Shown here piece by piece: positions 20,701-22,791 of a stretch of DNA of 46,132 bases. The DNA comes from Guillardia theta CCMP2712 (taxonomy: Eukaryota; Protista; Cryptophyta), in contig NW_005434623.1 of NCBI RefSeq assembly GCF_000315625.1, forward strand, positions 289,055-335,186, read 5' to 3'. Made by a program: the position numbers and the translations under genes. The notes below the pieces were generated by a model. That model did not search any database, was not told where the DNA came from, and saw nothing but the letters and a program-made list of their open reading frames with translations. Within the stretch, counting starts at the first letter, position 1. The number at the start of each line of letters is the position of its first letter.

Positions 20701-22791
20701 TCCACCCAGCCTTGATCTGCTGTCCTCCAGTCTGTCCTGCACTCCCCATGTCTTATCAACCATCCCGAGCTGCTTATAATTGTCTTGAAACAGATCTCCG
20801 TCCTCTTTAACTCCTTGCACCCGCCTCCTGTATCTCTCCCGCTCCCTGACTTTAGCAGAAAACGAGACATAAAGATGCTCTGGACCTGAGTCATTCTCAT
20901 CACCACAACGAAGCTCCCAGTCTCGATCGCTTTGCTCAACACGTATCCAGCAAACAGCATGTTCCTCTCTCCCTCATAGCAGAGGGCCTTGAGCAGGTAT
21001 CGCTCCATCCTGTCCAGCGCTTCCTGTCTGCTCACCGACGAGCTGTAGCTGCTCGGGACTGCCTCCATCTCCCACAGCTCGATCTTCTCTTCAGCCTCCT
21101 CCTTATCGTCCACACTTCTCCTTATCTCCTCCCGCACGGTGAAGTCAAGCACAGCAACCACAAGTTTCTCTTCTGAAAGATCCTCCAGCCTCCTCATGCT
21201 TCTCCACTCGTCAAACCGCGCGGAGGAGATCTTACCCCTCTGCAGCATCCTGCCGACTCGCTCCACCAGCTCCGGTCCGATCTCAGCTGCTACAGATCGG
21301 TGATACTCCAGGATGGACTTGGACGAAAAGGTCGTACCCTGATCCCTCATGAAAGCCAGCAGAAACAGCGAGCACAGTCTCCAGCTCGGCTCCTCCTCCT
21401 TGAGGCTTGACAGGAACCCCTTAAGTAGGGCCCTCACATGCTCCCTGAAGTCCTTCACCTGCTCTGTCGAGTACGCGGCTACGACGACCCTCGCTCGCTT
21501 CTGCTCAAACTCGTCCTCCTCAGCCGACTGATTCACCTCCCCCCCCTTCCTCTTCCTCGCTAGGGCTGTAGAGACGGCCTCCTTGATCTTTACGACCTCC
21601 TGAACGGTCTCGCCATCTTCCCACATGCAGAATCTCGGGAGATCCTGCAGGTTGATGCAGACTGCTGCCTGATCCTCCTGCTTGCTCCTCCTCGCACACT
21701 CCATCACAGCTTCTCGCAGCGGCCTGTTGAGGGCAAAGATCCCTTCCCTCTCATCCAACAGCTGCTGCACAAACTCTGATTCGTCATGAGCCCCCTCGCC
21801 ATGGCTGCAGGAGTAGCAAATGCACCAGCATCGAGGCAAGACGTCTTTCACCGCCTGCTGCGGGAGCAGCCGTTCTGTCTCCTGCAGACCCTCCCGGTAT
21901 CTGCAGGCATCGATGATCACAAGGAAACAGCAGCTGCTTCTTTCCTTCTTCGAGCTCTCCTCGAATCTCTTGATCAACTGGAAGACATGGGAAACAGATA
22001 GAGTGTAGTCCTCAACCTCCTCCTCGGTCTCAATCGCCCCAAAATCACAGGGGATCAGGACGTCTTCCTTGGCCCTTCCTGCCTTCATCCCATGGCCAGC
22101 GTAGAAGAGGACGACCAGCTCCGGCCGAGCTCCGCCAAGAGTAGCAAGACCGTTCCGCAGGAAGCGAATGAGGTCGGAGCGCGACTGTGGATCCTTCTTG
22201 AGGAGCGACCATGATCTCGGAGTCCTCCTCAGCTCTAGGTGCAGCCTAGTCGCATCCCTGACAGCGTTCTCCAGCTCCCAACCCGGCTGCACGTACTTGT
22301 CCGCTCCTATGCAGAGGCCGAACACCCGGGGCGGCTCCAGGAACAGAATCTCCTGCTGGAGAGGAGACCGCAGGAAGTTCATTCCTCTAGCGCACAGTGA
22401 CGGGATGCTGTTGAGGAAGAAACGTCAGGGGACATAAATGACTATTGAAGGGGATTTCAAAGGTGCAGGTCACTCAGTTCAATCAGAAAGATAGTGATTT
22501 CAGATTCTGGGTGTGAAATCAATATTTCATAGAAACATCTTGATACCTGTCACGCAGTGCAAGCAGCTTCCTGGCATGCTCGCTCTTTGCGACCTCTCGT
22601 ATCAGATCTCGCAGCTCCCCGATCTTTCCATTATCATCTCCTTTTTGAACGGCTTGTACTCTCCTCCGCTCCTCCACTCCATCTTGATCCCGCCTCCTTT
22701 CGTACACTTTCACAGCCACCGACAGAACCTCTTCTCCTCTCTTTCTCCTCCTCTCTTTCTCACGGGATCCTCCATCGCCCTCTGACGCCAT
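17780..22791 (-). CDS. Caspase-family (Peptidase C14) protease - unknown domain - MLKL-like helical bundle - Ser/Thr kinase - armadillo-repeat fusion protein
   Basis: Exons 22791-22547, 22386-20511, 20470-20377 and 20151-17780 join in frame via GT-AG introns (4587 nt, 1528 aa; 1445 aa if started at ATG 22382). Caspase motifs: FGLCIGADKY…LENAVRDA…LFYAGHG…VIIDACR. Kinase motifs: GKGGFG, VAVK, HKDIKSQN, DFG, GTLYWMSPE, SDVYSLG. Five GxIEAI/VV..M…VQEWG..AL.NL repeats. Confidence 0.85.

Follow-up and report, generated by a model that had tools for sequence, protein, structure and literature searches.

A p10-less, bacterial/paracaspase-like caspase domain at the head of a kinase and armadillo-repeat protein in the cryptophyte Guillardia theta

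To our knowledge Guillardia theta has no caspases, and its sole characterised C14 protease is the type III metacaspase GtMC2. A stretch of 46,132 nucleotides from the G. theta CCMP2712 genome (contig NW_005434623.1, positions 289,055 to 335,186, forward strand; the whole of it is called the window here, and positions are counted from its first letter) nevertheless carries on its minus strand a caspase-like domain whose motifs look bacterial, next to what reads as a eukaryotic protein kinase. The locus therefore raises the question of what type of C14 domain this is, whether it really belongs to one protein with the kinase, and whether it is likely to be a working protease. The original prediction, made from the letters alone, called it a bacterial-style rather than a typical metacaspase domain, active, possibly of bacterial ancestry and recruited into a kinase chassis. 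Sequence comparison supports assigning the domain to the p10-less, bacterial/paracaspase-like C14 type. It belongs to a separate and apparently eukaryotic clade, and it is spliced in frame to a kinase and armadillo repeats.

The domain lies in an open reading frame (ORF) of 645 amino acids (22382..20445, minus strand), the translation of which contains LCIGADKY, LENAVRDA, LFYAGHG, VIIDACR and YSCSHGEGAHDESEFVQQLL. Both the LCIGADKY to LENAVRDA strand and the YSCSHGEGAHDESEFVQQLL segment on which the prediction was built are therefore present in a single reading frame. The codons proposed for the catalytic dyad were also read correctly, since, read base by base, the His of LFYAGHG is encoded by 'cat' at 22094-22092 and the Cys of VIIDACR by 'tgc' at 21905-21903. 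The Pfam model Peptidase_C14 (PF00656) matches ORF residues 23-211 with 36 bits (E 7.9e-9, cut-off 21.4), and in a six-frame search of the G. theta genome itself (87.1 Mb assembly, 669 contigs) the caspase exon was again over the cut-off, at 38.3 bits. The caspase-domain observation is far beyond chance and is confirmed. Its main elements are listed below in ORF residues; adding 90 gives the residue of the 1,533-residue protein described further on.

21615..22337, minus strand: caspase-fold (Peptidase C14) domain, ORF residues 16-256, protein residues 106-346, delimited by Pfam, the AlphaFold2 model and superposition on MALT1
22092..22094, minus strand: catalytic His codon (FYAGHG), ORF His97, protein His187
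21903..21905, minus strand: catalytic Cys codon (IIDACR), ORF Cys160, protein Cys250

The AlphaFold2 model of the domain, computed from a 51-row family alignment, has a mean predicted local distance difference test score (pLDDT) of 87.5 and a predicted template modelling score of 0.87. Foldseek placed MALT1 at the top of its matches (E 4.5e-10), followed by caspases-9, -7 and -6. With VIA-align, model residues 16-256 were superposed on MALT1 residues 339-563 at Z 20.6, with 208 aligned residues, a root-mean-square deviation of 3.2 and 18% identity, and caspases-7/9/11 came out at Z of about 19.4. A phmmer search of the PDB with the single domain sequence gave no match, and MALT1 was reached only with the family profile. 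A word-indexed search with region 1-262 of the ORF was empty as well, which reflects a length-window limit and does not speak for absence. According to the model, the domain is a complete single-chain caspase-hemoglobinase fold, the fold on which the prediction depended. The 'p10-like segment' of that prediction is real as a segment, but it is not a separate p10 of the metacaspase kind; consisting of strand 5, helices and strand 6, it forms the C-terminal half of one continuous fold. A homodimer prediction of the caspase domain scored 0.00, which is evidence neither way.

Across 1.84 billion representative proteins, an exhaustive HMMER search with the 262-residue domain gave only 134 matches at E ≤ 0.001. 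Once the bacterial-looking rows had been taken out of the family profile, family members scored 215-335 bits with it. The highest scores outside the family, 92-119 bits, were those of 119 bacterial 'caspase family proteins' (named matches came from Marivita, Pseudosulfitobacter, Nibrella, Ginsengibacter, Phenylobacterium and Desulfobacterales); these are the best 119 of thousands and were themselves taken from a profile search, so the comparison somewhat favours bacteria. The DCCR/DTCR-type C14 loci of the same genome followed at 49-67 bits, then MALT1 at 38 bits, TbMCA2 at 29 bits, Yca1, AtMC4 and GSU0716 at about 20 bits and caspases at less than 12 bits. The unpurified family profile gave 52 versus 34 bits, and over the different profiles MALT1 ranged from 38 to 52 bits. 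The canonical metacaspase of the same genome, locus L013 (FSGHG/DCCHSG), gave no match to the family profile. This ranking, in which the bacterial proteins lead, MALT1 follows and metacaspases (29 bits or less) come behind it, is the one expected from a bacterial-style domain rather than a typical metacaspase, as had been proposed.

The motifs lead to the same placement. The 119 bacterial rows read L[VI]IGN..Y, LxNPxNDA, [YF]YAGHG, ILDACR and A.D, near-invariant, at the positions of the window motifs, and the window domain carries all four bacterial-type motifs (LxN..DA, YAGHG, DACR and A.D after strand 5). MALT1 reads YYAGHG/LDMCR. The rule that such motifs mark prokaryotic homologues and paracaspases, and that metacaspases read otherwise, thus held in the bacterial rows, in MALT1 and in L013. 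The main family-specific difference is the Cys of LCIG, found in 47 of 51 family rows where bacteria have Val or Ile. The NCBIfam model 'caspase, EACC1-associated type' was also tried; it scored 17.8 bits against a cut-off of 140, which is below threshold, and we do not claim membership.

Since no solved protein matches better than MALT1, whether by sequence profile or by structure, and YAGHG and DxCR are common to both, the domain might be a true paracaspase that shares a specific common ancestor with the paracaspases of animals or Dictyostelium instead of representing an independent bacterial-type lineage. Protease-only homologues in non-metazoans have indeed been termed 'type 2 paracaspases' (Staal et al. 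2018, PMC5978004). However, bacterial caspase-family proteins stand some 60-80 bits above MALT1 with the same kind of profile, and caspases lie within 1-2 Z units of MALT1, so the structural match does not discriminate between them. Pfam found no death domain and no Ig domains in any exon, so the layout of type 1 paracaspases is absent as well. We consider this explanation unlikely, although it is one of the two strongest of the rival explanations.

The residues expected of an active protease are in place. In the model, the dyad residues terminate two strands, His97 that of residues 89-101 and Cys160 that of residues 152-161, in keeping with the C14 pattern of a His and then a Cys behind strands 3 and 4. 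The His column holds His in 49 of 51 family rows and in all 119 bacterial rows; the Cys column holds Cys in 45/51 and 119/119, respectively. Three acidic residues occupy the positions predicted to line the S1 pocket:

22254..22256, minus strand: Asp43 codon (LENAVRDA), first predicted acidic S1-pocket residue
21909..21911, minus strand: Asp158 codon (IIDAC), second predicted acidic S1-pocket residue, two residues before the catalytic Cys
21783..21785, minus strand: Asp200 codon (GEGAHD), third predicted acidic S1-pocket residue, directly past strand 5

In profile alignments, Asp43 (Asp in 48/51 family rows) is aligned to the Asp of 'KAPLVDV' in MALT1, and Asp158 (50/51) to the Asp of 'LLDMC'. 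The S1-pocket role of Asp43 is suggested by what is known of MALT1 and the metacaspases. Asp200 is conserved in 42/51 family rows and in 119/119 bacterial rows, and from its motif position it is probably the equivalent of the third acidic pocket residue of MALT1. An acidic S1 pocket goes with cleavage after Arg or Lys in MALT1, metacaspases and orthocaspases. Because Asp43, Asp158 and Asp200 would form such a pocket, the domain is predicted to be an active endopeptidase with cleavage after Arg or Lys, like those enzymes, and not after Asp. Gating by Ca2+ would not be expected because there is no metacaspase p10 domain.

The activity of this particular copy is suggested by its intact residues, and the module could instead be a catalytically silent scaffold, a pseudo-protease that serves assembly in the manner of c-FLIP or the pseudo-orthocaspases. 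Six family members (P0004, P0005, P0007, P0015, P0020 and P0028) have lost the His, the Cys or both, and the S1 Cys noted for metacaspases is missing (PMC5756287). In contrast, His and Cys, the Gly residues flanking the His, Arg161 and all three Asp are retained in the window copy, and the relative from Hanusia phi, a sister cryptophyte and the best database match (62% identity), has kept the same residues. A silent scaffold is therefore improbable for this copy, about as improbable as a true paracaspase.

Much less probable still is a divergent but otherwise ordinary eukaryotic metacaspase of type I or III. The host is a eukaryote with metacaspases, a single Pfam C14 model covers all types, and metacaspase structures are still weakly matched by the family profile. 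However, these matches are limited to the first ~90 profile positions, those of TbMCA2, Yca1 and AtMC4 ending at ~96-133. The window reads FYAGHG and IIDACRY against FHFSGHG and DCCHSGT in L013, and so lacks the metacaspase p20 signature of (Y/F)SGHG and D(S/C)CHSG. Where metacaspases have GCxND with the S1-pocket Cys, L013 reads RGCINDV and the window ENAVRDA. No separate Ca2+-binding p10 of the metacaspase type was found, as the C-terminal half superposes on MALT1 up to residue 563 and the region beyond it corresponds to no known fold. Metacaspases were also absent from the 50 rows listed by Foldseek and from the 50 listed by VIA-align for the caspase model.

The phylogeny agrees with this separation. 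We computed an unrooted maximum-likelihood tree (LG+C20 with posterior mean site frequencies, 103 rows, 285 columns), the rows of which exclude paracaspases, caspases and named plant or fungal metacaspases; its metacaspase-like outgroup consists of two G. theta loci, L013 and L019, with canonical motifs in L013 alone. The family forms one clade of 42 rows with support of 100/98, and within it the window and the H. phi protein are sisters, also at 100/98. The clade is nested neither among the sampled bacterial rows nor with L013 and L019, which have very long branches, so the nesting within metacaspases that would have spoken against the prediction was not seen. In a quick tree, the patristic distance from the family root was ~2.2-2.3 to the bacterial rows and ~3.4-3.6 to L013/L019. 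All named members of the clade are cryptophyte and the others look eukaryotic; the clade is apparently confined to eukaryotes. It is marked by a first strand that reads LCIGxxxY, and it is called the LCIG clade below. Descent of the domain from bacteria is possible. A recent transfer is unlikely, however, because the clade is separate, its stem is long and there is no close bacterial donor.

Two other groups of sequences in the searches lie outside the clade. Loci L014 (C308), L015 (C118), L016 (C6) and L017 (C266) of G. theta represent a second p10-less C14 type with an LDCCRS motif; they include three near-identical copies on different contigs and group in the tree with bacterial-like sequences and not with the LCIG clade. 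P0106 and its cluster contain a 561-residue 'caspase family p20' protein of the bdelloid rotifer Rotaria socialis, which belongs to neither the LCIG clade nor the bacterial cluster and sits near the base, at no firm position. This protein is possibly a separate acquisition in an animal.

The connection of the caspase exon to the kinase is given by assembled transcripts. Logan contigs from three runs of three studies (X1, X2 and X3) map to positions 17700-23156, and in all of them the identical three segments, each GT..AG on the minus strand, have been removed. The X1 contig (5,487 nt) spans 17700-23156 with all three introns gone. Because the introns are gone, the contigs derive from spliced RNA. 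Once joined, the exons read through from the ATG at 22791 to the stop at 17780 as a single open frame of 1,533 codons, which holds both the caspase and the kinase, and the fusion that the prediction had assumed is borne out. Domain searches were run exon by exon, and the join was checked for continuity of the frame. The order in the protein is a charged N-terminus of 90 residues, the caspase domain, a middle domain of ~360 residues, a helical region, the kinase and armadillo (ARM) repeats:

17780..22791, minus strand: whole coding region in four coding exons, 22791-22547, 22407-20511, 20464-20377 and 20151-17780 (stop included), 1,533 residues
22408..22546, minus strand: intron 1, 139 nt, GTATCA..CAACAG; the joint 22407/22547 is present in X1, X2 and X3 and joins an 82-codon charged exon in frame to the caspase exon
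20511..21596, minus strand: middle domain, ~360 residues, with matches in the same genome at 27-41% identity, always beside a caspase-domain match
20465..20510, minus strand: intron 2, 46 nt, GTAAGC..GGACAG; joint present in X1, X2 and X3
20152..20376, minus strand: intron 3, 225 nt; the boundary variant GTATGA..TTCAAG keeps the frame and connects exon 3 (88 nt) with the kinase exon; joint present in X1, X2 and X3
19541..20151, minus strand: helical region before the kinase, no Pfam domain in residues 1-199 of the exon-4 ORF
18821..19540, minus strand: Ser/Thr protein kinase of the TKL type, Pfam Pkinase E 2.6e-38, non-RD
17807..18394, minus strand: armadillo-type repeats at the C-terminus, Pfam ARM_LRRK2 E 4.1e-8, residues 628-777 of the exon-4 ORF

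The N-terminal stretch has no family match in Pfam or NCBIfam. The middle domain, which is conserved in ~25 loci of the genome and in H. phi, likewise belongs to no family in Pfam or NCBIfam; its AlphaFold2 model (pLDDT 71.8) gave no Foldseek match, and the best VIA-align Z was 6.0, to small alpha/beta folds of the ACT/RRM-like kind. The closest solved relatives of the kinase are CTR1 and IRAK4 (E ~3e-25). In its translation the motifs GKGGFG, VAVK, HKD, DFG and SPE are intact, so it looks like an active kinase of the non-RD kind. The genome contains many ARM matches to residues 582-750 of the exon-4 ORF.

At both ends of the gene there are features of their own. At 17770-17784, plus-strand raw reads of a further RNA run, X16, run into poly(A). 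A convergent gene on the plus strand therefore has its polyadenylation site exactly over the stop codon (17780-17782), and the 3' ends of the two genes overlap. In the transcribed leader, an ORF of 138 codons in another frame (22710-23126, minus strand) overlaps the main start at 22791; it may be a long upstream ORF, or else the actual 5' end or start may lie elsewhere.

The gene is one of a family in its own genome. There are ~20 full-length paralogues in G. theta at 33-43% identity, nearly all with the same middle domain after the caspase domain. Across the cryptophyte members this following domain measures ~300 residues. Only one other locus, on contig C21, repeats the order of caspase, middle domain, helical region and downstream kinase. 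The next ORF on the same strand past this caspase-kinase paralogue (L029, 1379-2704, minus strand) encodes an Arb2-type alpha/beta-hydrolase-like domain, and no ARM repeats are found there. A tandem array at C97:155000-232500 consists of at least eight same-strand copies of caspase plus middle domain, spaced ~7-14 kb apart and some of them truncated. The other members of the family come from marine metagenomes and metatranscriptomes, where the caspase is paired with ARM, TIR, LRR, Roc-COR, U-box or GREB1-like helicase domains. One of the non-cryptophyte members, P0038, lies on a Tara scaffold. Both these partners and the sparsity of bacterial-style gene calls on the contigs point to protists. 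Within G. theta itself, a caspase head of this kind is also fused to a GREB1-like partner. Identity to the bacterial proteins listed is 21-31%.

Also dispersed in the genome is a repeat of ~660 bp, found at C1:695138-695517 (L027, about 1642-2083), C87:334590-334969 (L028) and at least 10 more loci, the C1 and C87 copies being 98.6% alike. It holds an internally deleted copy of the window caspase exon at 89-93% DNA identity, corresponding to window positions 21831-21930, 22002-22119 and 22224-22444; ORF residues 54-88 and 132-153 are missing. It appears that a mobile element has picked up a fragment of the gene and dispersed it.

Even less credible than a diverged metacaspase is a caspase exon that is a recent bacterial transfer or contaminant, or two separate genes joined by read-through or misassembly: the motifs are bacterial-like and the joints are seen in contigs only, not in raw reads, but spliceosomal GT..AG introns flank and link the exons with the frame kept across all three, the joints recur in runs of three studies, the family of paralogues and the H. 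phi relative exist, the domain order recurs in the C21 paralogue, and none of the bacterial proteins listed is more than 31% identical.

Several points weigh against the reading of the domain as an active protease of a separate, bacterial/paracaspase-like lineage. The dyad is lost in a minority of paralogues, which means that the module can also work without catalysis, as a scaffold. The metacaspase S1-pocket Cys is absent here, with Ala in ENAVRDA. The raw-read run X16 has almost no reads on the gene, and expression may be low, although X16 is effectively a 3'-end library and is uninformative on the level. All between-group distances in the quick tree exceed 2 substitutions per site, and because the tree is unrooted and contains no paracaspases, caspases or named metacaspases, it speaks for separateness and relative nearness, not for ancestry. 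Klemencic and Funk also urge caution in assuming a function for the metacaspase-like proteins of G. theta (PMC5756287). With these points taken into account, we put the probability of the reading as a whole, comprising domain type, clade, fusion, probable activity and the proposed switch, at roughly 0.8.

In the mechanism that we propose, the protease would be activated by a proximity of copies, or by a conformational change, that the kinase/ARM part brings about, and the protein may act as a one-protein signalling or cell-death switch. In a wider reading, cryptophytes would have a large and rapidly diversifying repertoire of immune or cell-death proteins that share the LCIG caspase module as their 'head', and this gene would be the one-chain counterpart of the kinase-plus-paracaspase signalling of animals. 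The heads would be fused to kinase plus ARM, to ARM alone, or to TIR, LRR, Roc-COR, U-box or GREB1-like enzymes, both in this genome and in marine protists known from metagenomes only. The ARM repeats would sense, the non-RD, IRAK-like kinase would signal, and the assembled protease heads would cut after Arg/Lys and trigger an apoptosis-like death. G. theta has recently been reported to die with apoptotic bodies (PMC12462507). We offer this wider reading tentatively and regard it as doubtful.

The p10-less, bacterial-type caspase homologues of G. theta thus include an expanded clade and are not just the small stand-alone enzymes of the reviews. In this gene and at least one paralogue the protease is coupled directly to a protein kinase, which gives testable candidates for cell-death or defence signalling in algae and bears on the distribution of caspase, paracaspase and orthocaspase lineages among early eukaryotes.

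The domain type in G. theta is already published and is not new. Choi and Berges (2013, PMC3734836) described p10-less 'metacaspase-like proteases' in this alga and proposed a bacterial origin. Klemencic and Funk (2017, PMC5756287) listed GtMC3-14, whose dyad they found intact and whose S1 Cys they found missing, and described the algal members as a p20 domain only. The domain studied here resembles GtMC3-GtMC14 in being a p10-less C14 domain of a cryptophyte with the dyad present, the S1 Cys absent and a bacterial resemblance, and this gene may or may not be among them. Unlike GtMC3-14 as described, it heads a protein of 1,533 residues with a 360-residue domain, a kinase and ARM repeats, and the genome has ~20 paralogues of this one subfamily compared to the 12 proteins listed as GtMC3-14. 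It is therefore not a stand-alone protease in the sense of the algal metacaspase-like proteins or the type 2 paracaspases, because the middle domain, kinase and ARM repeats share its frame. We have not found membership in an LCIG clade, the constant partner domain or the fusion to kinase plus ARM described in the published literature, and the multidomain fusion is the new part.

Bacterial orthocaspases such as MaOC1 of Microcystis share with the domain LxN..DA, YAGHG, DACR and A.D, and they too are single-chain, have no metacaspase p10 and are often fused to other domains. The domain differs from them in its identity of 21-31%, its LCIG Cys, its own clade, the spliceosomal introns of its gene and its eukaryotic partner domains. 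With canonical metacaspases (Yca1, TbMCA2, AtMC4 and L013) it has in common the fold of clan CD, family C14, and the predicted preference for a basic P1 residue; SGHG/DxCHSG motifs, a Ca2+-binding p10 and the S1 Cys are theirs and are absent here. MALT1 (PDB 3UO8, 3V4O) is similar in YAGHG, DxCR and the acidic S1 residues and is likewise part of a multidomain signalling protein. Unlike MALT1, which is only 18% identical and uses separate kinases and scaffolds, the G. theta protein has no death or Ig domains and carries the kinase on the same chain.

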